64,000 nucleotides of DNA, taken from contig NW_003314343.1 of the NCBI RefSeq assembly GCF_000143415.4, positions 682,813-746,812 on the forward strand. Direction: 5' to 3'. The translations under genes were made by a program, and so were the position numbers. Shown piece by piece: positions 35,501 to 58,875 of the stretch. This DNA comes from Selaginella moellendorffii. Taxonomy: Eukaryota; Plantae; Lycopodiophyta. The notes below the pieces were generated by a model. It made no database searches, was not told the DNA's origin, and saw only the letters and a program-made list of their open reading frames with translations. Each line of letters starts with the position of its first letter. Position 1 is the stretch's first letter.

Positions 35501-38500
35501 GCTCTTTCATCACCTGTCAATAGCATTGCGGAACAGAGCATAAGCATGTTGCGGGACATCCATACTCACCTCTCAGACAGCCTGCGGCAAAATTTGGTTC
35601 AAATACGCCAGTGCTTTATCAACGAGTGCCTGCGTAACTTGACTGCTGCCCTTGAGAATGGACACAGGAATACGGAGGCAACAGATAGTAACAGCATCAG
35701 TATGGTTGATGGGAACGTAGATGTGCCGGACGTGGAAAATTTTACCGAGTCGATAGAAAGTGAGGCAGACAAGCCGTGCACTGTGAATTTCGAAAAGGAT
35801 CCGTACAAAGTCGAGCGCTGCCTACGGATACTAAGAGTAAGCCTTCCTTTCCGTTTTTATGTTCTTTCGATGCTAATTCTTAACCGTTTAAATTTTCAGG
35901 AGTTTATTATAAAATGTGAAGGATCCTGCCCTCGTAAAGTTCCTGCGCATGGTGCTTCATTTCAAGGACGACCGCTTACTTTGGGGGTATTTGTCCAAAA
36001 TGTGTGGTAAAGTTGTAGAAAACGCGATGTTTTTCTGTAGGTTAGCACGGCAAATAAGCAGTCGACACGTTTTGACATTCTCGTTCATGCAAACGAGTAC
36101 CTTGGTTCGTTTCGAGCAAAGGTAAGATTTATTTTAATATTTGTGGTTTATTTCACCGCTCTATAGGTGGCTGAGAGGCTTGAATGTCCCGTTTCTCGTG
36201 TGCGTTTGATGCACGCAAACAAAGAACTTAAACAAGATTCACAGGTATGCTTTGCCGCTATAGTTGTTTCTGTTGGCTAGAAGGATGCATGGCAGGTGTT
36301 GCGGCAGCTGGGCTTAACCGATGGTCAGCCCCTGACTGCGTCGGTATGTTAGCTTGCTTGTGATTCCTTTTACTGATATTCTTGCAGGTTAATATCGTGG
36401 ACCTTGTTGAAGAGGAGATGGATGAGCTGCAGCTACCGGGACTTCTGATATCAAAGAGCCCTCAGGTACACGTCACACCCACCCTATTGTCTCTTGTGCA
36501 TTCTGATTATCAATTTTGCAGGTCTACGATATCCTTTTCAGACTTGCCGAGGCGGGTCACGGTGGTGTTCGGGAGGTTAGTCAGCATCGTACATTTCATG
36601 TTTTTAACGGAAATTTAAATGTCAGGAAGCAAACTATCTCCTTTCATTGCTGCCAACACATCCTGGAATCCTCAGTGAATTTCAGGTAAACGTTTCTTGT
36701 TTTTGCGTTGTCCGAACAAATTATTCATGACACGCGGGACAGAATTTACACAAGAAGCCAGTGGCCAAAGCAAAAGAATTTCTTACTTTGCAATTTGGAG
36801 CCCACTGTCGACTCCTGTATACACTTCAGGTATACATACGAGATTTTACGGGATTTTGATTTGTTTTCTTTTTTCACAGATAGTGGACGGCTTGCTTATG
36901 CCCGTCAATCGAAATGTCGAAAATCAGCGGTTTAGAAATGACTTTATTCGATTTGGAGGCTTTCGGTAAGTTGTGTCTATCAATTGTTTATCATGACATA
37001 ACAAACGAGTTCCAGGCATTTAATGACGGTTTTCGAACCTGGTGCGATGATGGGAGTTGATAGTCAGACACGGCGTGGCTGTTACACTAGCGCCCTACGT
37101 ATTTTAAAGCTTTTGGTGAGTAAGAAATTGTGTTCACAAATCCTTATTAGTTCCGAAATGTTCAGTTGTCAGAAACACAAACTACTTCTCTTTCCGACAA
37201 CACTCGAATCATCGGGTATGTATTTTCACTACCAGGCAGGGAGCGATTTCTGATGTTTTTAAATATGCAGAGGAGATACAGTCGAAGAATCTGAAAGTGG
37301 GAGCACCATCTCTGTTAACGACGACGTCAACGTTGAAAAAGTAACCAGAGTAGTTTTCCAACAATGACGTATATGTAAACCTTTTCTTTGAGCAGCTGGA
37401 AGTGATCGACATGTCAGTAGTCGCAGGTGCTCTAAAGCGACTTACTTGGGGGACTGCACTAGGCCAAATATCTATGCTAGCCAGTTCTGCGCCTTTGGCG
37501 GAGATTTTGAAGGGTCGAAGGTCTGAAAAGGTGACCAATGTCTAATTTGATGTGCTGACCCTGCTATACTGACTCTAGACGTTATTCTTGCAGAAGTTTG
37601 AAAACAGTGGGGACTTCTTAAACCAGGACGATCGATACCTCTGCCTTGAAGCGCTGGAACTTCTTGTAAGTTTTTCTCTTTTTATTTCTTTCTCTCTCTA
37701 AATCATACTTCTTACCAGGTGACATGCCTGCTGTCACATAAATCATTACTTGGAACTTTCTTTTCATCTCCCGACGTTGGCAGGTTTATTGTGGTACGTA
37801 TTTTGTCTCTTTTTCTACTTGTATCAACTTATTTCTTCTTAGGATATGGTTTTACATTCACCTGACGAGTTTGTCAGATACCAGGCAGCGTCCAGCTTTC
37901 TGAGATTGAGGTAAAAGATGTTTTTGTGTTTAGAATGTTGTAACAGCTATGATTTCTTCAGCAAAGAATCGGGAAAACATCCTATCGTTCGTCGGCATCT
38001 TATGGCCGCCCTCATTGACACGAAGGCGGAAGCTAACACCGAGCCGAAGCGCTGTTTACCAGTAAGTCCAAGTGACGTTAACGTAGCGACTGAGCTGTTT
38101 TGTTTCAGTTTTTGGAGCTCTTGGGGCAGCTCTTTTATCGCATCAGTGGGCCTGAAGAGCATGCAATGGGGGAGCAGCAGCTTCTGGAAGAGCTTTCTTG
38201 GCTTAGATGTGCACCCGAGGCCACTGATGACGATGACAGGGTGGGTTATTTTATTGTGATCGCAACTCTCTCTCATCTGTTTTCTCTGCACAGCTTCTTG
38301 AAGGACACTTATTTTTAGTAAAAGTGTTGATAGAAGTTCTTGATCGACGTCTTATTGGCTCGAGCAAGTTGCCTCAGGGGACCGGCCTAGTGCAAGAGGT
38401 ACTAAATTTCTGCTTGTCGGACCAGGAGAACGCTGACAGTGATAATTTGCAGCTGGTTGAGAGTTTCTTATTTCTAGAATCGGCAATGCTATGGAAAATC

Positions 38501-41500
38501 GACGATGACAGCTGCGACAGGCTCGATGACAGAGTCCTGCAGTCGAGGTGCGGGACTCGTCGAAGTCGCGAAAAGGCTTTTCAGCTGCTGACTTGCCTGG
38601 CCACCCACTGCATTGACAACTTGAAGGAAATAGTGGATCTGCTGGTGAAACTTCATTTCTCATCCGATATTCACGAATGGGAGCACTTGCCTTCGTATGG
38701 TCGAAAAGCTCTCAGTGGCTACGTCGGGCTGAAGAACGCCGGAGCCACCTGCTATATGAACTCGGTCTTCCAGCAGTTATACATGCAACCGGATGTTCGG
38801 CGGACAGTTTTAGAATGTAAGGAGTGCGACGACATGGAGAAGGCAGACTCAGTTTTTTTCCAGCTGCAAACCATGTTTGGGGCTCTTCTTGGCAGTAGTT
38901 TGGACCATTATACTCCTCAGGGATTCTGGGATGCGTACCGGGACTACGATGGGATGCCGATCAATCTTCGGGAACACCAAGATGCTTTTGAGTTTTTCAA
39001 CCGCTTATACGATGCTGTTGATGATACATTAAAAGCGACACACCAAGAGACAACGCTGACGAAAATCTTCGGCGGCATTTTTGTCCAGCAGGTATGCTCA
39101 ATTGTGCCTGTATGTCCTGGGATCATAACATTTTGTTTGTATCTCTTTCTTTTTCCCCAGGTGATTAGTCGCGGGTGTAACCATTGCAGCGAAAGAGACG
39201 AACCGTTTGCAGCGATCAGCGTGGATGTGAAGAACAAAAGAGATTTGCTCGAATCTCTGGATTCTTTTGTGCGAGGGGACTTGCTCGAGGCTGACAACGC
39301 ATATTACTGTGATGAATGTGGCCGGAAGGTTGACGCACTCAAGCGGGTATGCGTGAAGTCGCTTCCGCAGACTCTTGTGATTCACCTGAAGCGTTTCGAC
39401 TTCGACTACGAGACCATGCAACGGTTGAAGCTCAAGGACAGATTCGAGTTTCCGATGCATCTCGACATGAAAGCTTTTACGGTGGAAGGATTGGCCCTCC
39501 GTGACAGCATGAGTCAAGAAAGCTCGAGCCCAGCCACTACAAGCAATGGTGGTACTGATGGAAGTATCTGCAACGAGAATGGGGGCCTGAACTCCAAACC
39601 GGACTCTTACTATCAGTATGACTTGGTGGGTGTAGTTGTACATTCGGGGACCGCATTTGCTGGACATTATTATTCGTATATTAAAGAGAGGCAAGGGGAT
39701 ATTGAAAGGTTGGTACTACGATTCTTGGATCCTCGCTTCTAACTTTCAGCTGTGCATTCCAGGTGGATTGCCTTTGACGATAAACGAGTGGAACCGTATG
39801 ACGTAAACGATCTCGAGAAGGATTGTTTCGGTGGAAAATACAGCGTGGACGTGTATGATAATTTTTTAAAAACCATGTCGCCACAGGTACACAATTTGGG
39901 TGTCGTTTCAGTTGCTAAGTTTTGTCTCCTGTCTAGGACTTCGATCGACCGAACAGTGCGTACATGTTGTTGTACGAAAGGTCCCGTAATTACGTATGTA
40001 TCTTGGCTTTATTCTTTTCGACAATAACGTCCTCTTTGCAGGCTCCCATGGACTCGCCAGCAACGACATCTCACACAAAAGGTAGTTAGTTGTGTTCATG
40101 AATTCACGAATTATTTTGCTGTGTAATGTATCAGGTGAAGGCGATCAAGTAATGAAGGATAACTCGATTATGGATCGACTATTTACTGGGTATTTACTAG
40201 TTTTCATTGTCGGTACATTTTGAAGTTCTTTTTTTTTTTTTTTTGTAGGCGCCTAAGAATGCCAAGCTCAATACATCGAAGCGTTCGAAAAGAAAATCTA
40301 AGGTTAGGCTGTGGGATCTATTCTTAACTTTGCGGACTCTAATGACGTATGGGCTTTCAGATTTGTACACGAGAATCATCTCTTGGATAAGGATTATTTT
40401 AAGTTTCTTTACAGTTTGGTGGAGGCTAACTCGGATATAATTGAGGGAAGGTGCGTTTTCCGGTCTTCCAATGTCTGTTATAAACTATCGTCTGCAGGAC
40501 TCCTCGGTATGTTGGTGGACCTGACGACAGCCGAGACAGGAAGGGTGAGACAAGTGGACGTAAAGCCGATTTAGCGGCCAAGGACTTGAATGCTAGCGAT
40601 TTTGCAGAGCATAGTATCAGGATAGCTTTAGAATTTTTGTTTAGAGTATATTTGAGAACGCACGGTAGCCTTCGTGAAGACTTTCATCAATGGAAGGTAG
40701 TGGTATGATTTCGTCAATACCGTTTCTTGCATTGTTTCTAATCATTTGCTCTGTAGGTAACGATCTGGAAGCTCCTGGATCACAATATAATCGCCTGTCG
40801 ATGTTTTCTCAACACGCTGGTCGAGAGACCGCAATGGGTGCAGGATTTCCTCCTTCGGTGTCCCGTTGAAGAAGTTCGACAGGTTTGACGCTTTTGTTTC
40901 ATCCTTTGTAAGTTTTCCTGATATCGTTCCATTTAACAGGCTTTTGCTGCTCTTCTCGTCCATGCTCTAAAAACGGCCGTAAATATTTATCAAGGGAACG
41001 TGTTTTATGTGGACAATTGTGGTAGACAGCAAGACGCTTTGCATGTCGACGCCATGGTTGACACGCTGGTAATACTGCTGAGAGAAGCCGCGTCACCGAA
41101 GTCATATCTCCAACAGGTTTACAGCTCAATTCTTTTATAGTTGAGACTGCAACTAAAGTCTGTTGCAGTATTTCCAAGTTCTTTTGGACTACGTAAAACT
41201 GGGTCCCTATCCACGCCTACATTTACTTCGGAAAGCTGTTGTGGGTCATTTGGTGCGTTTCTTCTGTCTTTTGAGATTCTCTGGCATTTGCTAGACACCA
41301 AATGCTTTACGCAGGTGACATTTGCAACTAAATTCCAAATAGCTAAGCAAGATGCAGTGTACCTCCACACGGCCGTCTCTTTGCTTGTGAGGAGCTGCGA
41401 TGCTAGTAAACTTTATGGTAAGCTGATTGCTCTAAAATTGTCCAGATTGTCTGACGCTAAATTCTGACAGATGAACCGGAAGTTGACAAGAAGTCGGACA

Positions 41501-42380: not shown

Positions 42381-42629
42381 AGGATACAAATATCCCCATC
42401 TTCTTCTTTGTGTATTATATTACCACAGGCAAAAAAAAGAAACTATCTTCTTCAGGGCAGTCCCACGGCTAATTTCCCCGCGTGAATACAAATAACATGG
42501 ATTGTCCTTGCATTCTAGTACACATTAGTTGAACAGCTCGCTCTTGCTTCTCTCACAGCTCTTGTTTTCGTTCATTGTCTCTGGCGCGGCTCTTGCTCTC
42601 TTGCTTCGTTCACCACGGCTCCTGGCGCA

Positions 42630-42935
42630 GCAGAGATGGATAATGCTGAAGCTCTACACCGCCCGCGCATTTCGATGAGCTTGTTGGAGAGGAAGACACC
42701 GCCGCTGGAAGACAAATCCTTTCAACTCACAACGCATGCGTGTGGCAGCGACGAAGAAATCCGCCGCCATGCACTGCCCGGCCTCGCCCGCGTGGGAGCA
42801 CGGCGCAGCCGTGGTTCGCGAGAGCATGGAGTTCCAGGCCACCGTGTTTTTGGTAGTGATCCTATCGAAGCATCGCTTGGCAGCGCCAATCCTAGATCCC
42901 TGGCGGCCGTGACGCTCTGGACGAGCTCTAGGCAC
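42630..42935 (-). pseudogene. PPR gene fragment
   Basis: GRIGAAKRCFDRITTKNTVAWNSMLS is a typical plant PLS-class PPR motif. Frameshifted. Confidence 0.7.
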
Positions 42936-42959
42936 TTTCTCTTGGGTAAGTTTTTAAAA

Positions 42960-43811
42960 TTTCTTCTTCTTCGAGTCTTAATTATTTTTCATGTAGCTTT
43001 GTTATTTTGGATGCTTATCACTTCTACAAGAGTTTCTAGCTTCCATTTGCACTTTGGAAATTTTCATGTACCTGAAGCCACTTTAATTATCAAGGATCCA
43101 AGGTCTAGAGACCCCAGAGCTTCTCCACAATTTTCCTTGATTGTGGACAGGTTCACTTGGGTGCAATCCAATGAGCTCCAAAAGGCAAGAGTAGCTGAAT
43201 GGTTTAGCGAATATCAATGTGCTGACTTTGCTAGTGAATGGGATTATAGTTATTCCGAGGGGCATTGTAACATTAACGTGACTTATGGAGGTGGTGAAGC
43301 AGGCATAATAGGCTATATGGCTGAGGCATATGATATAGCAATAGGTGGTACCACAGGAATTGTAGTACCGCATGGCCTGTTCCTTAATGCTACTCCATTG
43401 GGCAAAGTGACCAGGATTGCCGGAATATTGTCTCATGGGCTTCATGAATCTTCTTTTTTCAGCCAGATGAGCAAGACAAATAACATCAAAAGCATGGAAA
43501 TCTGTAGCGTTTATAACGAGACAACAGATCGCTTGAATGGGACGATGCAATTTAAGGGTGGTGCATTTGACACAAAGCGGCTACAAAGGATTAATATTAC
43601 AAATTATGTTAGAAATAATCATTGGGGAGTTCACCTAAATAGCATGACAATAAATGGGTTCACTATAGGAAAAGAGTGTGATCAAGATGTTATTTTCGAC
43701 ACAGGAAGTTCTTATGCCGCATTGGCAGGTGACTGCTACAAAACAGTCAAGGATACCTTTATCAAAAACATTCCTTGGCCTGTTTACAAAGCACCAGAAA
43801 ATCACTCAACG
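42960..43811 (+). pseudogene. Truncated A1 (pepsin/nepenthesin-like) aspartic protease
   Basis: Signal-like hydrophobic stretch, degenerate first site FSLIVD---RFTWVQ, C.INVTYGGG flap, AGILS.G...SFFSQM, WGVHLNSMTING and VIFDTGSS. The C-terminal part is missing. Confidence 0.75.
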
Positions 43812-44879
43812 TTAGAAGTAATACCTCTTTTTCCGCTGTTCATACCACTCCAGGAAACGCCTCATCCCTGTATCAAAGCTGATGTAGTGATCCAACAGAT
43901 AGAGCTGAGTAGGAGCGACGTAAGAAACCTCCCATGGTGGCGGATTCAGGTTGTCCGCCTCCTCGACCAATGCCTCCTTGCCTGTCAACCTGGAAACGAC
44001 CTCGATCACTTGCCTGAACGATAGAGGTGGCTCTGGAGTGCCGATGTCCACCACAGTGACAACACCGGGAACATGAGCGATTCCCAACACCATCTGTTTC
44101 ATGACTTTGACAGCATCATCGACGTGGATGTAGTTCTGGTTTCCGATCCTCTGCCGCCAAAGAGGGACCTTCTGCCCGCCAACAATCTGCTCGGCAAACT
44201 TGAAATACGGGAAATCAGGCCGTCCGAACTCTCCATAAACAGTACTAAATCGCCATTCTATAACAGGAAGATGTAGCAAGCCCGCCTTGAGAGCTGCAAG
44301 TTCTTCCCCCGATCGAGACGACGGCATGTAGAAGCGGTTGGGGCTGGCAAAGAAGACACCACGCACAGAGTCGCTCGTCGTGGCTGCGTCGATGGTCCCG
44401 CCCAGAGTGCGCTGGTTGATGGGCAGGCAGTAGGCATGCTCCTGCTGTGAGAAATCCACGATGGCATGGGGCCTGGCAAGCTTGACCACGTTGGCGACCA
44501 GATCCTTGGCAGTCACATTCCCGTAGATCATGTGCACTCCAGCCTTGTCAAGCAGCCTGGATCTCTCGGTGTGCCTGGCATCGATCCCCACAACACGGAC
44601 CTTGGGCTTCTCATTTCCCTGCAAACCCAGAGCAAGGTGATAGCCGAGGAAGCCGCTTGCCCCCACCACGACGACCCTGATCGGCTTCTCCTTTTCCTTG
44701 CGGAGCTGGACAGTCATCGAGATACCCATGGCGAGCATGGCGGCTGCAAGAATGGCGACGAGGGCCAGCATGATCTGAAGCCACGAGAAATCACCGCCTG
44801 AGCGCCTCCGAGCCAGATGCGCACGACAGGCGGGGATGATCCCGATTCCCCTCACGGCCAGCTCCATCGCGCGCTCCAT
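43812..44879 (-). CDS. Membrane-anchored NAD-dependent epimerase-like SDR (GAE-related, atypical active site), 355 aa from first ATG
   Basis: TM helix WLQIMLALVAILAAAMLAMGISM, VVVGASGFLG, WRFSTVYGEFGRPDFPYFKF, NYIHVDD, GMRRFLEWY. Intronless and intact. Confidence 0.85.
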   Translation of the reverse strand: MERAMELAVRGIGIIPACRAHLARRRSGGDFSWLQIMLALVAILAAAMLAMGISMTVQLRKEKEKPIRVVVVGASGFLGYHLALGLQGNEKPKVRVVGIDARHTERSRLLDKAGVHMIYGNVTAKDLVANVVKLARPHAIVDFSQQEHAYCLPINQRTLGGTIDAATTSDSVRGVFFASPNRFYMPSSRSGEELAALKAGLLHLPVIEWRFSTVYGEFGRPDFPYFKFAEQIVGGQKVPLWRQRIGNQNYIHVDDAVKVMKQMVLGIAHVPGVVTVVDIGTPEPPLSFRQVIEVVSRLTGKEALVEEADNLNPPPWEVSYVAPTQLYLLDHYISFDTGMRRFLEWYEQRKKRYYF

Positions 44880-44989
44880 CGCGCGCTCGCTAGAATGTGC
44901 CAAATGTGAGCGCAATGTTAGGGCTAAAACAAAAGAAAATAAATAAATTTTGCCAAGGGGATAAAGTTATATTCGTCACGTATCCTAGG

Positions 44990-45230
44990 CCGGATGTTTC
45001 CAGAGATGGAGGTCCACAAGATTGTTGAGGCACTTCCGATCCATAAGGAATGCCTGCTCCGAGGATTGCTGGCGAGTATGCCCTTTCCCCCGGACGAGGT
45101 GGCTTGCAAGACTGTTCTTGCGGCGTGCGGATCTATCGCGATCTGGAGCGAGCAATCAGAGTCGCAGACGCGATGATGATTGATGAAAGGCCAAGCGTCC
45201 CTCTGCAGAGATTGCAGGAGACACTCTGGT
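44990..45230 (+). pseudogene. PPR E-domain-like fragment
   Basis: LLASMPFPPDEVACKTVLAAC, with frameshifted IYRDLERAIRVA. Confidence 0.65.
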
Positions 45231-45244
45231 AAGGGGACAAGGTC

Positions 45245-45930
45245 ATTTTATTTCTTTGCGACCTTCCTGTACATTTACGAATCCAGCCTCTTCAAAACTT
45301 GGAAAGAAAGCACCAGCACAATCGATGTCATAAAGGAAAGAAAAATCTGCGGGTTTCTTACCATCTTCAAGAGGGCGACTTCCTTTGCCAAACTTTCAAT
45401 ATACAACAGTTCCAGACAGTAGTTCTGAAAATGACAAGAACAGTTGACATAACACAACCGAAAGAAACAACTCACTTTAAACATGGAACCTTCTCCAAGT
45501 GAGAGCTTTCGTTTCCCTGGCTCCTCCCGAGTTGCATGACTTCTTCGTATCCTTCGATTTCTCTTCCACTGTGGAAGCAATTTTGATCTGTAAATACCAT
45601 GTTTAGCTGAGGAGAAACAAGAAAGCATAGCAAACCTGAATAGCAGTCGTAGCCTCAAGAAGCATCCTTTGCTGTCGCCCACTTGCTTTCGTGTTTCTAC
45701 CTTCTTCATTGTACTGGGCTCATCAATACATACACTTTCTCGAGTCAAGAGAGTACCTCTTCTTCCGAAGATTCCAGCTCCAACTCGTCACTCGCCAGAT
45801 CTCCTTCCTGAGCACCAGCGTTGCACGGAAGCGGTGGCTGAGGCACCGCTGTCATGGCCAACCCGAAAACAAGTTCACACAAGAGCAGAAACGCTTAAGA
45901 TGTTGTCATCCGGTGGAGGCTAAGCATATC
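45245..45930 (-). other. Possible spliced gene fragment of unknown function
   Basis: Exon-like blocks bounded by AG/GT on the minus strand (e.g. NYCLELLYIESLAKEVALLKM|gtaag and MTAVPQPPLP...ELELESSEEE|gtac). Confidence 0.3.
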
Positions 45931-46066
45931 TGAAACATAAGAACAGAAAATGGACAGACGTAGTCTAGGTGATGTGGAAGATGGTTCACGCACGAATGAC
46001 TTCCATCTCAGCACCTGATTAGGAGTAAATTATAATTTGACGAAATTACCCTAGTTTAGGGCTCGA

Positions 46067-46996
46067 ATGTCTTTTTTATTGCTCATTGTCTTTGTACTTT
46101 TGCTAATTGGATGGGCAATCTTCCAGCTGAAAAAGAAGAAGGAACTTCGGGTTTTGATTGTGGGTGCAAGTGGTTTCCTTGGTAGCCAACTTGCTTTGGG
46201 ATTGGCGGCACACAATCATCGCAACCTCCGATTTGTGGTGACCGGTTTGGATTTGGTGCGTTCAAAGAGGACTCTTCTTCTGGAGAACAAGGGCATTGAA
46301 GTGATTATTGGAAGTGCAACAGATCCAAAGCTGGCCATGTCAGTGATGAGGAGTAAAAAGCCAAACATTGTGGTGGATTTTACACAGCGGGAGCATAGCT
46401 GGAGTTTAGAGGACAATGAAAGAACTATAAAGTCATTGATTGATGCAGCATGCAGTGTTCCATCAACCCAAGGTTTCTTTTTTGCAAGCCCTAATCGGTT
46501 CTACATACCATCAAGCCGGTCTGGGGAAAAGCTGGTGGAATCTTTGGCACCAGAGCTACCATTTCCAATTGTGGAGTGGAGGTTTAGTACAGTTTATGGG
46601 AGATACGGTCGTCCTGATTTTCCATATTACACATTTGTTGATCAGATTGTGCATGGGGCTCTGGTTCCACTCAGTAGAGGGCGACAAAATTATATATACA
46701 TTGATGATGCAGTGACTCTGATGATCAATAGTATCTTGTCAACTCACAGCATTGGAATGGTGAATCTTTTTGACATTGGGACACCATGGCGGCCTATCTC
46801 TTTTAGACGCGTGATTAAAGCTATTGCAAGGCTTACAAACAAGGAAGCTAATGTTGAAGAAGTAGCTAATTTTAATCGGCCACCCTGGGAGGTACCTTAT
46901 GAACCTCCAACAAAGCTCTTGCTCCTTGAATCATATACGCCATTTGAGACTGGTATGAGCTCATTCATAGAGTGGTTCCAGAAGAATGAAGGATAA
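46067..46996 (+). CDS. Membrane-anchored NAD-dependent epimerase-like SDR (GAE-related, atypical active site), 309 aa
   Basis: N-terminal TM MSFLLLIVFVLLLIGWAIF + KKKK, VLIVGASGFLG, WRFSTVYGRYGRPDFPY, NYIYIDD, GMSSFIEWF. Intronless and intact. Confidence 0.88.
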   Translation: MSFLLLIVFVLLLIGWAIFQLKKKKELRVLIVGASGFLGSQLALGLAAHNHRNLRFVVTGLDLVRSKRTLLLENKGIEVIIGSATDPKLAMSVMRSKKPNIVVDFTQREHSWSLEDNERTIKSLIDAACSVPSTQGFFFASPNRFYIPSSRSGEKLVESLAPELPFPIVEWRFSTVYGRYGRPDFPYYTFVDQIVHGALVPLSRGRQNYIYIDDAVTLMINSILSTHSIGMVNLFDIGTPWRPISFRRVIKAIARLTNKEANVEEVANFNRPPWEVPYEPPTKLLLLESYTPFETGMSSFIEWFQKNEG

Positions 46997-48479
46997 ACAA
47001 TAAATCATTTATACTAAACTACACTAAAAATAAATAAATTTTTAGTTAATGAGTTGGACAATTGATGATCTCCAGCCGTACTACTTGTTCTAGAGCAAGA
47101 GCAACCTGTGACCAGAGTGGAATCAGGCACGTCACCACCATCTTACATCATTTAAGGTCAATGGTTCATTAAGTTTAAGGTCAAGCTTTGAGGCAGTTAG
47201 TCCACAATGGCAGCTAGTAGTTATGACTGCACATGGCTAAGGTTGGGCATCCACTCATTGTGCCAAGGCATTGGAGATTCTCTAACTCTCTAGTGTTGAA
47301 TGGACTTTGGGGATCTAGGTATTGGTTTGTGTCTCCTTGTGGTAATCCTATCTCCCATTCTCCATTCTGATTCTTGCACCTTGCCTTTGTCTCCTAGTTC
47401 TTGGCAAGGGATCTGGTTTGGACCCATAGAGATATGTCTATTATACAATTGAAGGTACTTCTTGATAGTATTCTCAAGAGATTACTAGAGATTACTAGAG
47501 ACATGACACTAGGGTTAAATCTCAAGAGGATCAGGCCACCAAAAGGTATATTTTATCCTTTATTCCAACTTCATCTTAAGCAAGTTAATCAAGTATTATT
47601 TTCCCTTTGTATTTCTTCATCTTCATTTTGTGTTAAATGCCTCTTTACAGCCTCATCAAATGCTCTTTTCATACCACCACAAACCATTGTAACCATTTCA
47701 ACTCCAAACTTTAAAACTTTAAACCATCTAACTCTAAATTTTCAAACTCTAAACTAACTAATTCCAAGCCATCCAACTCCATTCAGTTGTAGAGAAGAAG
47801 AGGCAAGGAAGGAAAATAAATGTGGCATGTAAGTGTTCTTTGATACTTTAGTGAACAAACTTTGAGATGTTTCATTTGGTTTTTTTTATTGTACTAGTGA
47901 ACTAATTTAATCTTCATCTTCTAAAGAATCAATCTCTCTTAGAAATTGATCATGGACGAGTTGCTTTGCTCGAATTTGGAATAATATTTGTGCTTGAGCA
48001 TCACAATGTTTAACATTTCTCTGTGCTTCTGTTTTCAGTCAAATTCCACTAGCTTTAAGTTGATCAAAGCCATCTAATGCATGTTGTAATTCATCTCTAG
48101 AATTTAGATTTTCTACTTTAATTTGATATAGTTTATATATTGTTGTACAATTGATTTATTTGACACCTTGTGCTTCAAGTGATTGAATGCGTTCTGATGC
48201 TTCCTTCTCAAATTGAATTCATCTTATTAGCTCCTTAACTTGATCAATCCATGAAAAAGATCAAATCTATCACTATGAGTTATACACATGTTGTGTAAGA
48301 TACAACATACAGTGATGTGATCTTTGATATTGTCAAGTCTTGAATTATTTCGTTTCACGAGAATCTAAAACCTAACAAAAAGCAACAAATAATCATCTTT
48401 AGTTATAATATAAAGCAAAATTATGTTGATTTTAATATGCTAAAAGCTCTTTCCACCGCCATTCTTGTGTTTGATTAAA

Positions 48480-49100
48480 TGAAGTTTCAATTTTGCTGCC
48501 ATCTGTTTAACCTGTCTTTTGATCCCTTATATGAACTAAACATATATAAATGTCTTCTACTAACACAGATTTCCTAAGGTGTCCTTAAAGCAGCTATAGA
48601 CTAACCGATTGTGACAACTATCGGCCCATCTAAAATCAAAATCCCAAATCAAGAGTCTTATAGAAACTATAATTTGTATAATAACAGAATGAAACCCTTT
48701 TCTGTTAAAATATTATTGTGGATTTTTAAAGAAATCACTAGTATATAATTCTCATCAATTGCTCCAATTACATATGGTATACCTCTTAGCTCCTTAAATT
48801 CCTTTGCAACACAATTGTCAAAGCAATAACAACCTTAGTCTTTACCAAAATAGCCCTTTGAAGCCTAGTATCTTCAATAAATAACCATTTAAAAAGTCTT
48901 TCATTGAAATGTTTTTTAAAAACTCATAACCTTCTCTTGAACATCTTGTCACTGTAAGATTGGACCAAAGTATAACCTATGAAAGAGCTAAACCTTTCAT
49001 AAGCCCATACTTTTGGAGATTGACAAGATTTCCTCCTTACTTGCTCAACAGCTATAGCTAATAAATCAAGCCAAAATTTCAATAGAATAAGATTGCAATT
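48480..49100 (-). mobile_element. Degenerate PIF/Harbinger transposase remnant
   Basis: Minus strand VAKEFKELRGIPYVIGAID (~48810-48752; cf. GFP..IGAIDG) and IWDFDFRWADSCHN (~48655-48610; cf. GWPGS.HD). Confidence 0.6.
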
Positions 49101-49865
49101 GGTAAAATCAGGAAATAAAACATTAAGTTAATAGAACAAGATAGTAGCAAATAGAAATTTTTGTTTGAAATCCTTCTCTAGAATTTCAATCATCAATCCT
49201 TAAATTTGTGATTTGAATTTGAATTGTAACATGTGGCAATATACTAATGCTTACTAATAGAATAAAACTTTTGTGTGGTAGATTATTTTAAGCCCAAAAC
49301 TTCAAATTTCCCAGTGGAATATAGGCCTTATTAAAAAAAAAAACGAATATAATTAATGGCAAAAACCATATTAATTACAATGGAGAACATTAAGCATCAA
49401 ATGCTAAGCACCGTAGAAGAGCAAGACTCAGCAAGTGAAGTGATTTATTTTAGTTTTGGCATATTTGGAAGCCAATGAGTATAAAACTTATTTGAGGCTA
49501 CTTCACTAGTGGAAGTGGCTATTGTATCAACTGGATGATATGCTTAAATTAGGTCAGCAAAAATCTTTGATTAATAATTTACCTTGTAATATTTAAAACA
49601 AAGTATGAGAGATATTAAAAGATAATATTGTCAAGATAACAGCAAAATATTCTACTCATTTTCATAAAGGAAAATTTCTATAAACTCATAAGCTTAATGC
49701 AAGTTCCAATCTTAATCAAATTTATATTTGCATTACCAATCAAGATACAAGCTTCTATTTCTCAAGTTATGATTCAAGACATTGATTTAGCAGCTATTCA
49801 AGTAGTTCATATTGTTGCCTTAGTGTAGAGGCATTCTTAAACCACAACATATGACATTTATAAAT

Positions 49866-50300
49866 TATTGTGAATGTTATTGCCGGTATAAAAAGTTTAT
49901 TCCTTTTGAATATTCTTCTTATACTGCCACAACAGTAAGAGATTGATATTGCTGGTTCCTTTTTTAGTCCCTCTTGTTCAAGTGTTAGAAAATTGGGCTT
50001 AGCATTTATACTTAATTAGATGAATATAAAATAGGAACTTATTTTTCTGTTGAGCATACCTAGTCTGGCTTTTAGTTTTCTTTTGTTTTATTTTGCACTA
50101 GCTTAATAAAAACCTCTGTAATATTGAGTTTGGTCCATTAATATTCGTTAGGTGATAGTGTATTGTGTTTGTCAAGACACTCTTGCTATCATTTCCCCAT
50201 GTATTGGTTCCATTCGGTCCAAATGTATAGTAAAGATAGTGGGTGATTAGGCATGGCCAACTAACCTAAGGCATAGTTTAGCTCTGTTTGTGTGCATAGT
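49866..50300 (+). mobile_element. Degenerate, internally deleted family B LTR in plus orientation
   Basis: Begins with TTGTGAATGTTA..GGTATAAAAAGTT (cf. TGTCGCGAATGTGACTTCGGGTATCGAAAGTT). Reverse-complement similarity to 50320-50975. Confidence 0.65.
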
Positions 50301-53300
50301 TTAGTTTAATAAGGATAGACGCAGAACAAATATAGGCACGCAAGTAAAAGCTAGACTATGCCTTAAATTGGTTAGCCAACCTACTATCCCCCCCCCCCCG
50401 AGGAACACACATTTTGGGATTTCACCCCAAGCCTCCCTTAGTACTAGGAGTTAGTCTCTGGGACAAGCTTAAAATTTACTAAACATGGAATATCTCTAGA
50501 TTGCAAATTTGAACACGAAACGAATACCATTGTATTTAGAACAATCTTTACATTCCGTAGATATGCCAAATAAGCAAATTTAGACACTTTCCATAAATAA
50601 CATTTAGGACCAGAATGAAACTAACACAAAGAGCATGATAGCGAGGGTGTTTGGCAACCACGGTAAGCTATCATCCAACGATATTGAGAGACTAATCTCA
50701 ATACGTAAAGGTTTTTGTCACTAGCCAGTGCAAGACACAACGAGACAGGAACTCCTTACCAGGCTAAGTATGCTTAGCTAATAACACGTAAGAATTCCAT
50801 CCTTATGCTCGTCTGGTTTAAGTACACTTGAAATGCCTAATTAACTCCACTAGCACAAAAGGGATTAATAAAGGGTCTAGCAATACCGACCTCTTACCAT
50901 CATGGTAGTAAAGAAAAAATATCCGAAAGGACAATTGATATGTAACTTTTGATACCCAAAATCACATTCATGACACTCTCGCCTCTTTAGGGAAGATTGA
51001 CATCCTCGTCAATGCATACTCCAATCTAGACCACCAGCAAGGAAACAACTCTAGAAAAAGTTCACGGTGATTACATTATGTAAGAAATGCACCAACTTAA
51101 ATAAGTTAGGATAACCTCTTTGTCTAACGCAGATGCGCTACCAACTTAGACACCTTCCAGTCGTCGCCGACAAAGAAATGATCAATGGAGTTAACCACCC
51201 TTGCTACTTTAGGTGTCACTAAATTTACAAAAGTGTGATACGCCCTTACCCGCAAGGACATAGAAAGAGAAGCCAGAGGCCCCAATCCTCTTGAGCAAAT
51301 AAACTAAACCCATAGGTAAGGTTTAGATAGACTACTGTAAACAAGAAGTTAGAGTTGTTTACACAATTATGCCTTTTTAACGGAATAAAGAACATTGACA
51401 AAGAGGTAGGTGATGTGACCAGTTGACAGTAGCTACCCCATGATTAGAGATTTCACCATGCACATGAAGTGCTGAAACCAATCTGCCTATATGGGCCAAA
51501 CTCAAAGATCAATAGATGGACAATATCAAAGTTATAGACAATGATATCTTAGAGTCTTAATTATTAATGATTAAATCTTATATTAGAACACAAAAGTATC
51601 CTAAAGAAGTTATTATCCGATAAACCAGTATCAAAGTATAGAAACCACCAAGATCTTTAAGGTTAAGATTATAGGATTAACCATCCAACAAAATTCAATA
51701 GCAAGTGTATCATCAAGAAAACTCAATGATAAAACTTAACTATCAAAGATTTCAGATAGCATGCTAAAAAACTTGCATAAGATAACTAAAAAAAATATAA
51801 AGTATCATTGATTAGCAAGCAAGATACTCGCAAATGTATTACCCAAAGGTAATAACATTCAATTTATCAAAACCAACTATAATAATAATCAACAAAACAG
51901 AATGAATATAGCAATATCAACAAACACTAGTTCATGCCAACTATCGCACTACCCAATCTGAATAGATCTTGGTCAATAATAGAAAGGAACTCAAGTTGCT
52001 TAAACAAGTGTCAACAACATCCTAATGATATCTCAAACTCAAGAGACCAATCCAAAGCAAACTATAAAGAACTGTGGTATTGTAAAAAGGCATAAGCCAT
52101 CAAAGAGAATAACTAACCATCATGAAAAATCATTAATCATCCCATCAAAAAGAGATATGTAGAATTATCATCAAAGAAGGAATCCACCATCTCAAAGAAC
52201 AGCGAATCATTCTGTATCAACAACAATTAAGCAAAATCTTTTGACAAGAATAATCAACCATATTAGATGATGATCAATCATCACCAATAATTGCTAGATG
52301 CAAAAACCAACTTCAACATTGAAGCTAATGAGCCAAATATGTCTTCCCTTAACAACTCAAAACAAATAGAACAATGAGTATAAAAACTCAAAGAACCAAA
52401 AGTTCAAAGAAGCATATAGCTAAGTCTTGTCTAATAATGATCATGAGTTTTGCATGAACTAACTTCAATGCTAAAGTAGAAATTATAGTGTAACCCACAA
52501 TATCCTCCTCAACACATCCATAAGCCAAACTTCATAATACCAAAGCTGATGAAGAGAATATATGTATCAATTCAAAAGCCAAACATAATGGAGCTATGTT
52601 TAATAAATTATCACTAAATAATCCTCCATGAATCCATCTTTTATAGCAAGATATAACTCACATTACAACAAGCACAAGAAGAATCATCAATGATCAATAT
52701 ATTCCAACTCAAATCCAATAAAGATTCAAACATTCTAATATTGATTACTAACTCTTCCTCTCATAAAGCTGACATAGTCCACAATTAAATCACTTTTCAA
52801 AGAAAAGCCAAAACTCAACCCCTACTAAATAATCTCGTCTAGAGCACACTAACTCAAACTTGCCAATTAGTTCGTTTGAACACCAATATAGTTGCTAACT
52901 AACAAATGCATGAATGCCAATAACATAAAGCCATAACCAAATCATCAACATTATCTTCATCGAAACTAATAAAACTTAATATTAATATTGTCAATGACAA
53001 GGCATCATTTCAATGCCATCAACACCAATTATCACTCAAAGCTCTCTAGCAACCAAGCTAACCAAAGTTGACAATACCTTAGTTAGTACCTGAGACTAAT
53101 CCTTCAGAAAAATTCAATTACAGATAACACTTTATCAAGGAGTGAATCACCATATCCAAGACTCAATGAAATTCAACACTACAAACTAAATGCAACCAAA
53201 TGATATTGACAGAGGTAGAGTCGACATGCCAACATGGAAAACCCAAGTAAATCTAACGATATGATCCTTTGTAACACCATCTAGTAAAGCAAACCCATCA

Positions 53301-55019
53301 TTAATAAATCTTCATCGAGTGAAGCAAGTGTCAACAGTCCTTGACAAAGTCTACAAGTAATCACTAGTTGTAAAGCAACTAACAATCACTCTTTAATTTG
53401 CCTTCACAAGACCCAAACACTAAACTCATGTTATCGAGTTATATATTTGTCCAACATGAATGTAATACCCCAAGTACAAGATAAAGGTTCATGGGCAAAC
53501 ACGAACTAAATGACCACTTGAATCCAACTCAACCGCGATAAGCTCACCAACTTGTCTAGCCAATAGCTCTGAGCATGCCTTGAAGAGAGTAGCTATGCAT
53601 GATCAATAATTAGTCGAAACTAAAGTGAAGACTATGAGATAGACTCATATTGGTACACAACCTCCTCATAGACAAAGCTATAATATGGGTAACATCTCAA
53701 ACTCAAACAACTAAGTTGGACATCACTATCCTCAACCAAGGTGTAGGGCTACCAAGACCAAATTAAGATCAGTGAGAGCTCACTACTCTCATAAAGTTTA
53801 ATGAAATGTAATGTGCAACCTGCCACCAAACACAACGCTACAGAAGAAAAGCACAAGGGTCACCCTTTTTAGAAAAGCGTAACAACCACTTTTATACACT
53901 AACTTCAGACTTTATTCAACTCAATTGCCTTAGCCCCAAAAGTCAACATCCCTTTCAGGCCATATCATACAAATTACATACTAAGGTTTAAACTAACTAA
54001 AGTCAACTCCAACCCTTTCACTAGTTTGTATTAACTTACGAAAACAGAATGGTTTTTGAGCAAAATGATGAATAGATCAGCCATTGGAAAAGTCTAAGAA
54101 AATTTGTGGAAAGTCACAGAATACAAACTTTCAAAACTCAATCAACTTCTTCTTACCTACAACTTCACATAGATTCACCTTAACATTAATTCTCATGACC
54201 CATAGTATGCTTAAGTATTGAACATCATGCTTATATTTCCAATATCTAACACTAACATCCGCAAAATGCAAAATGAACATCCAAGGTTTGATCACGAAGA
54301 CTATATCTTCGAATATCCACATTGCACTAACACTTTTCTTCAATCACTTTCAAGATCCAATATGAAGCCCAAACACTAACAAAAAAATGGCATGAAAAAT
54401 CAAACTCTAAGGAAAAACTCCTCATCACTTGAAACAATAATGCCACTTCCACTAACACAAGTGCTAGTGATGTCAATGCTTTAACTACACACTTTCTCTA
54501 TCTAACAATCTACTCCAAGTGTTAACAGAGTAACTGATAAGCTATAGCAAGTGAATGTTATAACCTTTTCTAACACCTCACCCTCAAGGAAACAAAGTAC
54601 CAACATAAGCTTAGCATAATTGATTATTATCGAGAATCAAGTCAAAGCTACTACAATGCTACTATTTGTAAGTAAACTAGCTTCACTATCAACCAATTTG
54701 GGGTTGATCATCATTTATCCAAGTAACTTCGTAAACACATCATTCATTATCACATGGATATAATATAAATATCACAATGATTTAATCATCAATTAAGCAA
54801 CACCACGAGCAACACCTATATCATTAATTCAAAGGTTTATGTGACTATCAAGTGCCAACTCAATTCGACAAAATGTAACATAAATACCACACTTCACCGA
54901 TAGAAATTTATAACATCCAACACCACTAACTTTTATTCACAACACGAACAAACTCATGCCACTCTCTTTCCGACCAAACTCAAAATTAATCCAACACCAA
55001 ACTACTCAAAAAGCAATAG

Positions 55020-55666
55020 TGTAACACACTTTATCTTTCTCCCCTTAAACTAATTGAAAAAAGGGGCAATTGCTTGATGAGAGAGCCCTTAGTAGCTTTA
55101 TCCCCCAAAATTCCAAGAATCCACAGTGACAGTATATCCAAATTTCATCCCATAATTACATGCACTACACTCACCCCCCCTTTAGAGATGTAAATGTCCT
55201 TATTGACTATTGACTAATAACCTCTACTGAGCCAAGGGGAACTAACACCTCCATTTCTGCATTAAATTTACCAATCCTTTTTATTGTGTAAATTAGCTAT
55301 TCCATATGAGGCAACTAGTCATCCACCCATACTGCAGTCCCACAATGGATACTTTCGTCCGTGGATACTCCACACATGAGGAAGGACATACTCATGGATG
55401 CCCAATGCATATGATTTCAAATTTAGGGGTAGGAATATACCTTGCTCAAGGGTATATTATACTTTTAAGTAGCCACTAATAAATGGGAATCGAATTCGTG
55501 CCATTTGCTCTCACTTTATCTCTTTCCCTTTAAGCCAACTAGAAAAGGGGCAATTGCTTGATAAGAGAGCTCTTAGTGGCTATTTTATCTTTATTTATCC
55601 CCTAAGGTTCCAAAGATCCATGGTGACAGTATATCCAAATCTCATCCCATGATCATATGCACTACA
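55020..55666 (-). mobile_element. TRIM-like miniature LTR element
   Basis: ~150-bp direct repeats at 55020-55169 and ~55506-55666, TG...CA ends, PPT AAAGGGGGGGTGAG, TGG-starting PBS-like site at ~55503, flanks AATAG/AATAA. Confidence 0.8.
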
Positions 55667-56928
55667 AATAACAAGGTTCCCCAGAAAAAAATTAAGCATT
55701 GCAACCCAAATCTTCAATAGCAAGCCTAAACAAAATGGTTTAGCGCTTCACCACTATCTATCCCATAACTCACCACTTGTAAAACCACTATAACTAACAT
55801 GTATCAAGCTAAGGACTCTTGATTGCATAATGTGAACACGAGCAATGAGTTAACACCTCGTTGCAAATCATCTCTCTAAAAAGAGAAGATGATTTATGTG
55901 TTTGACCCGTCGTCCTTGATAACTCTCTTTTTGGTCTTATCTTTGACTAAACCTCAAGCTTGCATTCACACTATTTTCAGTCTAATCCAAGAAAAGTTTA
56001 TGAGAGAGCATAGCAATCACTATTTGAATCAATAGACTAATCCTTATAGTCTTGATTGATCCACTCATAATCATGCTTAAGAAGGATTCATTAGTGCTAT
56101 ATTAAACAGCTATGAACTAGCCTATTTACCACTTATAGCAAACCTAGGGGAAGTTTACTTTCACCCATGGTACATGGAACAATTCATGGAACCACCGATA
56201 GGTTAATATTAATCTTGCAAACTCAAAGTGTAACCTTGAGTTGCTAATGTGCCTCACTCACAAGCCCAAGCACAAACTCGTGCTAACAGAGCATCTCAGT
56301 CCATCTTATAAGCCCAAGAGCAGGCTCACATAATATGGTACTAAAGTTACTAAATCCATACCCAAGGAACGAATATGAAGCTTTTGCACCAAAACATGTA
56401 CCCACTCGGATCATCATTTTCATCTCTGTGTATACAACAAGATTAGTTGCCCAATCTCATTGGATAGTATTTACTGAGACGTATTTTCTAATACCAAATG
56501 TAGTGCATGTGGTTTTTACCCTTTATCCTATGGTGATTTACCATAGGATAACATCACAAAGTGGAACCTAAACCCTCCATATGCCACATGTCACATGCCA
56601 TGTGTCCAAAAGACAGTGGTACGGAACCTTAGTTTTAAGGCCTTGGGCCACTGGATGAAAGAATGGTGCCAAACTCCTAAGCATGGAGCCCAGGAGTAAT
56701 GGAATTGGACCACGGAGCAACTCCCAAGCATACAGCCCAAGGAGCGAAGGGACAGAAGCACAGAGTGACTTGGAATAATCCTAAAGTATCAAACATCCCA
56801 ATGCCAGGACTAGCACGCAAAATGAAGTTAAATGAAGTTTGGCACTATTTCAGCATACCAATGGTTTAACGCAAGGATATAGGTACTCCACCAACTAGCA
56901 TAAAATGGAACTTGGGCTTAGACCCAAG

Positions 56929-58875
56929 TGTGAGACACAAAATCCCTAGGCCCCAAAGTGGAGCTGGAAGGGCACCACGTGGTAGTGGCCGAAGCAAAAG
57001 CCAAACGAGTGTAACACGTTTGGACTAAAAGCTCCGACTTGAAAGGTCGAGAGCGGGAGTGGAACTCCCAACAAAGTGCTTGAGGAATGAGCACGAAGCG
57101 AGCCATAAGTGAGGCTCTAAAAAGGGACCCGAAAGGACCAACACATGACACGTGGAAGTGTCTGAGATGGAGTCCGAGGCAGACCCGAGGTGGAGTCCGA
57201 GATGGACCCGAAGTGGAGTCCGATATGGAGTCCGAGATGGAATCCGAGATGGACCCGAAGTGAAGTCCGATATGGAGTCTGAGATGGAGTCCGAGATGGA
57301 CCCCAAATGGAGTCCAATATGGAGTCTGAGATGGAGTCCGAAATGGAGTCCGAGATGGAGTCCGAGATAGAGTCCGATATGGAGTCCGATATGGAGTCCA
57401 AGATGGATTCCGAGATGGAGTCCGATATGGAGTTCGAGATGGAGTCCGAGATGGACCGAAATGGAGTCTGAGATGGACCCGAGATAGAGTCCGAGATGGA
57501 CCCGAGATGGAGTCCGAGATGGATCCGAGGTGGAGTCTGAGATGGACCCGAGGTGGAGTCCGAGATGGAGTCCGAGATGGAACCGAGACCGGGACCGGGA
57601 CTGAGACCGAGATCGAGACCGAGACCGAGACCGAGACCGAGTCCGAGTCCGAGTTTGAGTCCGAATACTAATACAGGCAGTTGGGTGAAAGCCCAAAGCG
57701 ATCATCCCCCAGGGGGGGGGGGGGGGGGGGGGGCTTCCCGGGGATTCCAAAAATTTATAGGGGAGAATGTGGGGGTTTGAACCCCACGGGGACCATTTTG
57801 TGCCGAGAAAGCCCTTTTTTCCCCCGGGGGGCAAAACCCAGTGGGGGGGGAAGGCCTTACCCCCGGGAAACTCCCAAAAAAAAGGGAANNNNNNNNNNNN
57901 NNNNNNNNNNNNNNNNNNNNNNNNNNNNNNNNNNNNNNNNNNNNNNNNNNNNNNNNNNNNNNNNNNNNNNNNNNNNNNNNNNNNNNNNAGGCCAGTTTAG
58001 CCCAGGCAGGCCAGACCCAGTGTTGGGTGATGAGCTGACCACTGGGAAGTCCAAGACTAGAGTGAACACGGACCGACAAGCTGGGTAGCTTGGTGAAGTG
58101 TTCAAGAGCCGGTTCTAGTTCCCCCGGGAGATCGACTGGCCGATGCTCCCAGTCCAAGCGTGGGTGGCACTACCTACTTGGATACCAGGCGTGGCTCAAC
58201 GGAACCTCACTCTAAGCCCATGGCTAGAGCACCCAAGGGCGGAAGGCGGGGAGAGTACCCAGGTGGCTCGCGTAAGGCCACTCCGAAATGTTGTCCCAAA
58301 GGCCCAGACTATGGAAAGGAAGAGGAGCAGTCCTCTGGGGCAGTGACCAAGGACGCAGTCGTGTAGTGAGGAAGTCCCAGAGGACCGTGGGACTTAGTGG
58401 TCGAGCCTGTGGGCCTCGATCCAGTGGCAGTGTTGGCAAACACGGCCAAGGGCAGAAAGGGACTTAGTGGGGACTGACAGAGGGATATTGGGGAAGGCTA
58501 TTCCCCTTGTCGGTGGGCATCCTAAGGATGCTAAGGAGTGGATCTGAGATGACCAATCACGGAGGGTTTGCCTAGTCTTGGAGAGCTAAGACTGTGATGC
58601 AAGTGGTATTGGACTACTAGTGTGGCAAAGGTGATTGGGCATGGCTTTAGCGTAACAAGCTGCCATGTTGGTGGTACCTTTGAGTGTCGGTCATGGGATC
58701 GGACACGTGGAGCACTTGGACCAAGTGCAAATGTTGAGTGGCATGGATGCCATTCTCGAGGCTAGCAAGTCCCAAGTCCTGAATTGGACTTATGGAGGTT
58801 TTGAATGAGACTCCTCCAAGTGGTCGGAGGTGTGGTTAAGTGACTAAAGTAGAATGGAAAATTTAGTCGTTTACA
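56929..58875 (-). mobile_element. Solo LTR, family A, with 5-bp TSD CCAAG, inserted in a family B LTR
   Basis: CCAAG at 56924-56928 and 58876-58880. Reverse complement of 6059-7871. The host LTR sequence resumes seamlessly after the TSD. Confidence 0.88.
57889..57988. other. Assembly gap (100 N)
   Basis: Run of N. Confidence 1.

Follow-up and report, generated by a model that had tools for sequence, protein, structure and literature searches.

The closest known family to the genes described here is that of the uridine diphosphate (UDP)-glucuronate 4-epimerases, extended short-chain dehydrogenases/reductases (SDRs) that include plant GAE1-6 (SDR50E), BcUGAepi of Bacillus cereus (6zl6/6zla), a Klebsiella enzyme (5u4q) and MoeE5 (6kv9). 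In BcUGAepi the substrate carboxylate is held by Thr126, Ser127 and Ser128, with Thr126 belonging also to the catalytic triad; Tyr149 acts as the base in catalysis, and conservation of the Tyr/Ser/Lys triad is universal (PMC7984243). The UDP-GalA carboxylate group is held by Arg185 of the RPD loop (PMC12338863). A stretch of 64,000 nucleotides from the genome of the lycophyte Selaginella moellendorffii (contig NW_003314343.1, positions 682,813 to 746,812; hereafter the window) carries a divergent pair of related genes, ORF1 and ORF2, each a single open reading frame (ORF) encoding a predicted membrane-anchored protein in which Tyr alone remains of the Ser/Thr-Tyr-Lys triad. ORF1 is transcribed and under purifying selection. 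The reading preferred here, at a probability of roughly 0.55, is that the family to which both genes belong derives from a UDP-glucuronate-4-epimerase-like ancestor and now consists of ligand-binding proteins at the endomembrane that are non-catalytic or barely catalytic.

Both ORFs matched the Pfam profile for NAD-dependent epimerases/dehydratases (PF01370), ORF1 scoring 52.6 bits and ORF2 44.0 bits where the cut-off is 20.9. Each match was split into two stretches, the best of which was the N-terminal Rossmann part. Scores against the NmrA profile (PF05368) were 21.2 and 22.5 bits, under the cut-off of 27 for both ORFs. By sequence, the closest solved structures in the PDB were the Klebsiella NAD-dependent epimerase 5u4q and the B. 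cereus UDP-glucuronate 4-epimerase 6zl6. ORF1 was modelled with AlphaFold from an alignment of six family members and 76 canonical relatives (82 sequences). The model had a predicted local distance difference test score (pLDDT) of 88 and a predicted template-modelling score (pTM) of 0.82, and consisted of a long N-terminal helix, with residues 33-62 modelled as a single unit, followed by the alternating strand-helix pattern of a Rossmann fold. The top Foldseek matches were 4-epimerases of UDP-Glc, UDP-GlcA and UDP-GlcNAc together with dTDP-glucose 4,6-dehydratases, at target-normalised template-modelling scores of 0.70-0.79 and E values of 1e-16 to 1e-18; a feature search of the ESM Atlas returned generic bacterial epimerase/dehydratase clusters only. 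These data support an extended-SDR epimerase/dehydratase fold of the GAE/CapI kind for both ORFs, with a remodelled active site. One family protein bears the database name 'UDP-glucuronate 4-epimerase 1-like', which should not be taken as a guide to activity because the residues needed for that reaction are missing.

Pairwise, profile and multiple alignments concurred on the changes to the active site. When ORF2 was aligned to 5u4q and 6zl6 by phmmer and by profile, its Tyr146 fell on the catalytic Tyr and its Ser150 on the Lys. Across the 82-sequence alignment the catalytic Tyr is retained in the family, and Ser stands in each of the six family members at the Lys of the YxxxK motif, a residue that 76 of 76 relatives possess. 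A deletion of 22 columns takes out the Thr/Ser-Ser-Ser-VYG (SSSVYG) segment and the linker that follows it, leaving a single Ser (FFAS) ahead of the deletion at the region of the carboxylate-binding Thr126-Ser127-Ser128 (BcUGAepi numbering), and a further eight columns are deleted after the HLAAQ strand (beta4). The Arg of RDFTYxDD is likewise found in 76 of 76 relatives and is replaced by Gln in six of six family members; this residue is presumed here to contact the UDP phosphate, by analogy with Arg231 of Escherichia coli GalE. The Arg to Gln change adds to those listed in a first-pass annotation made from the sequence alone, which had reported the replacement of Lys by Ser, the loss of the SSSSVY segment and linker and the conversion of HLAAQAG to DF(S/T)QxEH, all of which the alignments to 5u4q and 6zl6 and the 82-sequence alignment confirmed. 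Translation at the exact coordinates likewise verified the two intact frames and the hydrophobic N-terminal segments that it described as anchors, and found GASGFLG, VDF(S/T)Q(Q/R)EH, FFASPNRFY(M/I)PSSRSGE and WRFSTVYGxxGRPDFPY in both ORFs.

Not all of the site has been altered. The family retains 29 of the 58 columns that are at least 80% conserved in the relatives, including the three Rossmann Gly, the Asp that follows beta2, the Asn and Tyr of the active site and the RFxTVYGxxGRPD loop. In both ORFs the WRFSTVYGxxGRPD sequence contains the counterparts of Thr178 and Arg185 of BcUGAepi, and the remodelled block contains two invariant Arg, one at Tyr+5 and one in NRF, which are Arg189 and Arg182 of ORF1, respectively. 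Judged from these residues, the Arg185/Thr178 side of the family pocket is preserved; its Thr-Ser-Ser side has gone, as have the Lys and the RDFTY Arg. The GASGFLG motif suggests that a cofactor may still be bound.

Conservation within the family is highest around this cleft. Among stretches of 17 residues the remodelled block is conserved best, with 14 of 17 positions invariant against 35.5% overall, a value that 41 of 5000 permutations attained. Next come the Rossmann loop and the WRFSTVYG block, each with 13 of 17 positions invariant, and all three blocks line the cofactor and substrate cleft. The exact retention of the motif put forward earlier holds in so far as this block is the best conserved; its Asn is not strictly invariant, since the ORF2 counterpart on GL377648.1 (L001a) reads PSRFY, and an ORF1-type copy at a second locus (L002) reads PSSLSGE instead of PSSRSGE.

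Nine sites separate the transcribed ORF1 allele from the sequence of the window, of which seven are synonymous and two non-synonymous. Under neutrality, with about three quarters of sites non-synonymous, such a split has a hand-computed binomial p of approximately 0.001, and P0278, the allele on GL377648.1, has precisely these two replacements. For the ORF1 type, this comparison of alleles constitutes the evidence on the ratio of non-synonymous to synonymous substitution rates (dN/dS). Synonymous sites between ORF1 and ORF2 are saturated and yielded no estimate. Among the ORF2-type copies, dN/dS was 0.15-0.28 over a dS of 0.6-0.9 when ORF2, L001a and a further copy, L001b, were compared with that of L002, and 0.26-0.42 between closer copies. 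These values indicate that ORF2-type genes were under purifying selection over a dS of approximately 0.6-0.9. Purifying selection, which the first-pass annotation had proposed from the shared motif, is thereby upheld by both the ORF2-type ratios (0.15-0.42) and the ORF1 alleles; the deep divergence over which it was supposed to have acted was found only within the paralog family of one species. Between the presumed haplotypes, the DNA of window positions 45075-47204 is 94% identical to positions 1-2122 of the L001 extract, and the ORF1 coding sequence has nine haplotype differences only (43917-44822), so that divergence across the locus is strongly uneven.

Evidence for transcription of ORF1 was obtained from several sources. 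In 17 probable RNA-run assemblies, which come from eight studies, about one quarter of the words of a 3.4-kb stretch is present, a share that corresponds to the size of ORF1. Raw RNA-seq reads from two runs cover ORF1 from approximately 43839 to 44900 at a depth of 1-13. All first mates map to the plus strand, the orientation that a stranded library would give for minus-strand RNA. No reads were found in the same two runs over the flanks 42600-43660 and 45963-47900. A third run yielded a contig of 972 nt that aligns gaplessly with 43905-44851, and an intron in this interval can therefore be discounted. Both genes are single-exon ORFs, and the absence of introns claimed for the pair is thus borne out at the transcript level for ORF1 over that interval; no ORF2 transcript was found in the two raw runs or the probable RNA assemblies. 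Low-depth minus-strand reads extend approximately 1 kb upstream of the ORF1 start (44901-45962), with a loose read end at 45893 (three reads) and a joint of opposite strands between 45143 and 45227. These upstream reads could come from a leader that is long or alternative, or else from a transcript of their own, together with an inverted repeat.

The features of the pair are listed in Table 1. The mechanical ORF1 spans 43812-44915 and opens at a TTG at 44915, upstream of the first ATG. The two proteins are 51% identical over 295 aa (BLASTP, E = 6e-106), marginally above the 45-50% first estimated by eye. The strong difference in guanine plus cytosine (GC) content that had been remarked upon was confirmed: 56.4% in ORF1 and 43.3% in ORF2, with 68% and 41%, respectively, at third codon positions (GC3). 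The contrast recurs between the ORF1-type and ORF2-type copies at the second locus, and is therefore an old property of the two subfamilies. An RRR preceding the anchor of ORF1 is the layout that would be expected of a type II protein, and ORF2 lacks an N-terminal flank and has KKKK after its anchor; judged from this charge layout, the two proteins may face opposite sides of the membrane. In the RefSeq models P0001 and P0002 (ORF2 and a paralog), upstream exons (MWKM... and MLLAS...) replace the hydrophobic N-terminus; the simple ORFs encode an anchor in every copy.

Table 1. Coordinates in the window of the divergent gene pair and its sequence features.
Feature	Position	Strand	Remarks
ORF1-type gene	43812-44879	minus	355 aa from ATG at 44879; stop codon 43812-43814; predicted membrane-anchored, epimerase-like; transcribed
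ORF1 hydrophobic anchor IMLALVAILAAAMLAMGIS	44718-44774	minus	residues 36-54; Kyte-Doolittle 2.54; preceded by RRR
ORF1 Rossmann dinucleotide-binding loop GASGFLG	44643-44663	minus	
ORF1 VDFSQQEH	44436-44459	minus	in place of canonical (H)LAAQAGVRYS; 8 alignment columns deleted
ORF1 remodelled active-site block FFASPNRFYMPSSRSGE	44304-44354	minus	Tyr184 kept; Ser188 at Lys position; Ser/Thr segment and linker deleted
ORF1 WRFSTVYGEFGRPDFPY	44205-44255	minus	counterpart of RFFTVYGPWGRPDM; equivalents of BcUGAepi Thr178 and Arg185 kept (PMC7984243, PMC12338863)
ORF1 GNQNYIHVDD	44115-44144	minus	Gln at RDFTYxDD Arg position, without adjoining Arg
Region between the divergent genes	44880-46066	.	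1.19 kb; may hold ORF1 leader and promoter; low-depth minus-strand RNA reads to approximately 45962
ORF2-type gene	46067-46996	plus	309 aa; intact; paralog of ORF1 in divergent orientation; no transcript detected
ORF2 N-terminal hydrophobic anchor MSFLLLIVFVLLLIGWAIF	46067-46123	plus	residues 1-19; Kyte-Doolittle 2.88; followed by KKKK
ORF2 Rossmann loop GASGFLG	46163-46183	plus	
ORF2 VDFTQREH	46373-46396	plus	equally remodelled beta4 loop
ORF2 remodelled active-site block FFASPNRFYIPSSRSGE	46478-46528	plus	Tyr146; Ser150 at Lys position
ORF2 WRFSTVYGRYGRPDFPY	46577-46627	plus	
ORF2 GRQNYIYIDD	46679-46708	plus	Gln at invariant Arg position; Arg one residue before

Two word-index searches indicated that approximately 11 gene models make up the family, all of them from S. 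moellendorffii, several being the same loci seen in two haplotype scaffolds. A profile search of 1.84 billion representative proteins gave strong matches (E = 5e-167 to 1e-39) that were all S. moellendorffii models, and the next match, at E = 2e-25, was an ordinary epimerase with canonical motifs. No member outside S. moellendorffii was therefore recovered by the two word-index searches or the exhaustive profile search, in which clustering at 50% identity could hide close orthologs and which did not extend to the genomes of other Selaginella species. The family is not described in the plant SDR inventory and its supplements, a paper on the evolution of nucleotide-sugar enzymes, a paper on pectin gene families or the results of keyword literature searches.

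Locus L001 (GL377648.1) carries the ORF1 counterpart P0278, the ORF2 counterpart L001a, which is 96.8% identical to ORF2, and L001b (P0002), a further ORF2-type copy of 91% identity. At locus L002 (GL377588.1) a second divergent pair is found, with an ORF1-like copy on the minus strand beside an ORF2-like gene on the plus strand. It follows that the split between ORF1-type and ORF2-type genes is older than the duplication, which copied the whole divergent pair as one unit. The ORF2-type gene of L002 is intact, as are all four ORF2-type copies studied, each of which is open from ATG to stop with its anchor included. The ORF1-type copy of L002 (L002:6269-7334) contains two frameshifts, near 6600-6580 and 6420-6412, and is patched differently in the public models P0008, P0009 and P0010. 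No third family copy was detected inside the window by tblastn. Because positions 6189-6819 of L001 match window positions 63350-64000, the ortholog of L001b would be expected to start beyond the right edge of the window, at a distance of approximately 280 bp.

Canonical NAD-dependent oxidation and reduction at C4 of a UDP-uronic acid would be expected to fail once the Lys of YxxxK, the Ser/Thr segment and the Arg of RDFTY are missing, and because these three elements were lost together that reaction is very unlikely in the family. The cleft-lining blocks are held more tightly than the remainder of the protein and ORF1 is expressed; the cleft is therefore probably still in use. A dinucleotide, nucleotide or nucleotide sugar may be bound in it, and the proteins, a small set of putatively membrane-anchored extended SDRs so far seen in S. 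moellendorffii only, would act mainly by binding at the endomembrane with little or no catalysis. Plausibly they would serve as sensors or regulators, or would join active enzymes as non-catalytic partners through the SDR helix-bundle interface.

Several observations weigh against this proposal. The remodelled site has the lowest confidence of the ORF1 model (pLDDT 68 at residues 181-190), and the beta4 loop, which covers NAD in canonical enzymes, is shortened. The two frameshifts at L002 imply that some members may be on the way out. No reads of ORF2 were found in the two raw runs, searched over approximately 12% of each at 97% likeness, nor were its words found in the probable RNA assemblies; the tissues of the RNA runs are not identified, and reads from a more divergent ORF2 allele may escape that threshold. 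Of the two genes, ORF1 alone was thus shown to be expressed. The ORF2 allelic pair, with 11 non-synonymous and seven synonymous codon differences, has a dN/dS of 0.41, for which neutrality was not rejected (p = 0.12). Residual or altered catalysis by the retained Tyr and Asn with the invariant Arg at Tyr+5 is also possible.

Developed in full, this last point becomes the proposal that the family is a neofunctionalised enzyme in which Tyr184/146 and the Asn work with an invariant Arg (that of NRF or SSR) in place of the Lys. The substrate of such an enzyme would differ from UDP-GlcA and, given the loss of the UDP-binding Arg, would perhaps not be a UDP-sugar at all. The retention of Tyr, Asn, Rossmann loop and GRPD loop is consistent with such an enzyme, and a remodelled block that is the best conserved part of the protein and contains two invariant Arg fits a site with a specific task. 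Divergent SDRs such as the enoyl-ACP reductases operate with other Tyr-Lys spacings, a precedent that counts in its favour. The scaffold also tolerates loss of a triad residue, the Y149F variant of the B. cereus enzyme retaining 1/1200 of wild-type activity (PMC7984243). Set against these points, three elements rather than one have been lost together, and the Lys is conserved in all 76 relatives, including the metagenomic ones with a short linker. The Arg at Tyr+5 lies off the helical face of Tyr+4, the helix of the model begins only at the Pro at Tyr+2, and the neighbouring genes suggest no pathway. The proposal, the chief rival to the ligand-binding reading, is accordingly regarded as tentative and rather unlikely. 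Its more specific form, a lycophyte-specific SDR enzyme anchored at the endomembrane that uses the Tyr and the Arg of SPNRFYxPSSRS without Lys or Ser/Thr for an undescribed nucleotide-sugar or carbonyl/alcohol reaction, is distinctly less likely again. New nucleotide-sugar chemistry, which had been offered as an alternative to a pseudoenzyme, is possible, and between the two the loss of the RDFTY Arg weighs towards the loss of canonical nucleotide-sugar catalysis and against a new reaction of that class.

The opposite view, that these genes are functionless epimerase relics whose frames happen still to be open and whose motif is shared by descent and not by selection, draws upon the silence of ORF2, its allelic ratio, which is not significantly below 1, the frameshifts and the R to L change in the motif at the second locus, and the inconsistency of the public gene models for several members. 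It is difficult to reconcile with two genes that are saturated at synonymous sites and yet share 51% protein identity and intact frames, or with a dN/dS of 0.15-0.28 sustained between ORF2-type copies, all four of which remain complete with their anchors. Strand-specific transcription of ORF1 and the 7:2 split between its alleles are equally unfavourable, and as a general account decay is improbable. Pure decay of ORF1 was ruled out by its transcription and substitution pattern. Decay of single copies is certain for the frameshifted copy at the second locus, and perhaps applies to the silent ORF2.

In a tree of 92 rows the family formed a fully supported clade, in agreement with its earlier treatment as a separate subfamily, on a stem of approximately two substitutions per site and with an unsupported attachment point. 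Constraining it to group with plant GAE and other anchor-bearing GAE-like proteins (36-row set) cost 7.4 log-likelihood units, with p = 0.16 in the approximately unbiased (AU) test; the trees contained no Selaginella or bryophyte GAE. Identity to GAE-type relatives is 20-28%. The descent from plant Golgi GAE implied by the first-pass annotation was thus not established: on these sequences, derivation from the plant's own GAE is compatible with the data, neither shown nor rejected, and the hydrophobic anchor and single-exon structure fit such an origin. Horizontal transfer from a bacterium or virus with a short-linker epimerase was also considered. The unconstrained tree does not join the family to plant GAE, the top profile matches beyond the family were short proteins of metagenome and sequencing-run assemblies, and the metagenomic proteins P0031, P0068 and P0141 share a shortened linker between Ser and Tyr and the sequence RFSTxYGEWGRPD. 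Placement on so long a stem is unreliable, however, and grouping with GAE is penalised only to the extent given above. The N-terminal anchor is common to the anchor-bearing GAE-like group, and in the short-linker relatives, whose identity to the family is only 24-28%, the Ser/Thr, the Tyr and the Lys are all retained. A foreign origin is therefore possible but unsupported, and has a very low probability.

The remainder of the window offers no coherent pathway, its neighbouring genes being of aspartyl-protease-like, ubiquitin carboxyl-terminal hydrolase, F-box and SMP types, and those at the other loci of P450, SNARE and UGT types. The aspartyl-protease-like ORF (PF00026, E = 8e-07; 42636-44024, plus strand) is convergent to ORF1, its mechanical frame overlapping the 3' end of ORF1, and outside the overlap, over 42600-43660, the two raw runs gave no RNA reads. 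Two F-box ORFs, both of 323 aa (11949-12920 and 20379-21350, plus strand), lie 8.4 kb apart and probably represent a tandem duplication. An ubiquitin carboxyl-terminal hydrolase ORF (PF00443, E = 4e-42; 38324-39742, plus strand) and an ORF with an SMP lipid-binding domain (24012-24845, plus strand) are unrelated to the epimerase-like pair. An AT-rich block of approximately 15 kb (48500-63350), with a GC content of approximately 30% over the part profiled (to 50 kb), is missing from the other haplotype scaffold, where positions 3834 and 6189 of L001 flank a gap of only about 2.3 kb at the place of the block. Repeats or transposons inserted in one haplotype only would probably account for the block.

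The UDP-glucuronate 4-epimerases provide the best matches to the family both in the PDB and among 1.84 billion proteins. Both have the two-domain extended-SDR fold, the GxxGxxG motif, the Asp after beta2, the Asn and Tyr of the active site and the RFxTVYGxxGRPD loop with its Thr178 and Arg185 equivalents. The N-terminal anchor resembles that of the anchor-bearing GAE-like proteins retrieved, and the ORFs are likewise single-exon. The family differs in the replacement of Lys by Ser and of the RDFTY Arg by Gln, the deletion of Thr/Ser-Ser-Ser-VYG and linker, the reduction of the HLAAQAGVRYS loop to DF(S/T)QxEH, its identity of 20-28% and its stem of approximately two substitutions per site. The fold, Rossmann and GRPD features of a GAE are thus present and the triad, carboxylate network and RDFTY Arg are absent, and the family should not be filed as GAE. 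Shortening of the segment between the Ser/Thr strand and the Tyr is shared with the metagenomic proteins P0031 (named UDP-glucuronate 4-epimerase in JGI/IMG), P0068, P0141, P0024, P0032 and P0023, some of which also carry the RFSTxYGEWGRPD noted above, near to WRFSTVYGEFGRPD of the family. Unlike the family, these proteins retain the Ser/Thr (except P0023), Tyr, Lys and RDFTY Arg and possess no membrane anchor, and their grouping with the family was unsupported in the tree.

The NmrA/HSCARG redox sensors, the regulatory subunit MAT2B, the RNA-binding CSP41/CRB proteins of chloroplasts and NDUFA9 of complex I have a Rossmann or epimerase-type fold with incomplete catalytic residues and act by binding. 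Their likeness to the family would be one of functional analogy, without membership by sequence; these atypical SDRs are widespread and soluble or organellar, whereas the family is anchored and confined to one lycophyte in the data searched. In plants, the MAT regulatory protein MAR and CRB have been listed among Epimerase-domain proteins (PMC3220709), and atypical and unknown SDR types are known to occur (PMC3541173). With the Lys, the Ser/Thr segment and the UDP-binding Arg removed together, the family constitutes a natural test of the extended-SDR scaffold. Its reach is limited, since it has been seen in one species only, and it is likely to be of moderate interest to those working on SDRs and pseudoenzymes and on the cell-wall metabolism of lycophytes. 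If the ligand-binding reading is correct, Selaginella possesses a selected and expressed epimerase-derived protein that binds its ligand without converting it, and a membrane-anchored relative of the nucleotide-sugar enzymes joins the few SDR-fold proteins that act by binding.

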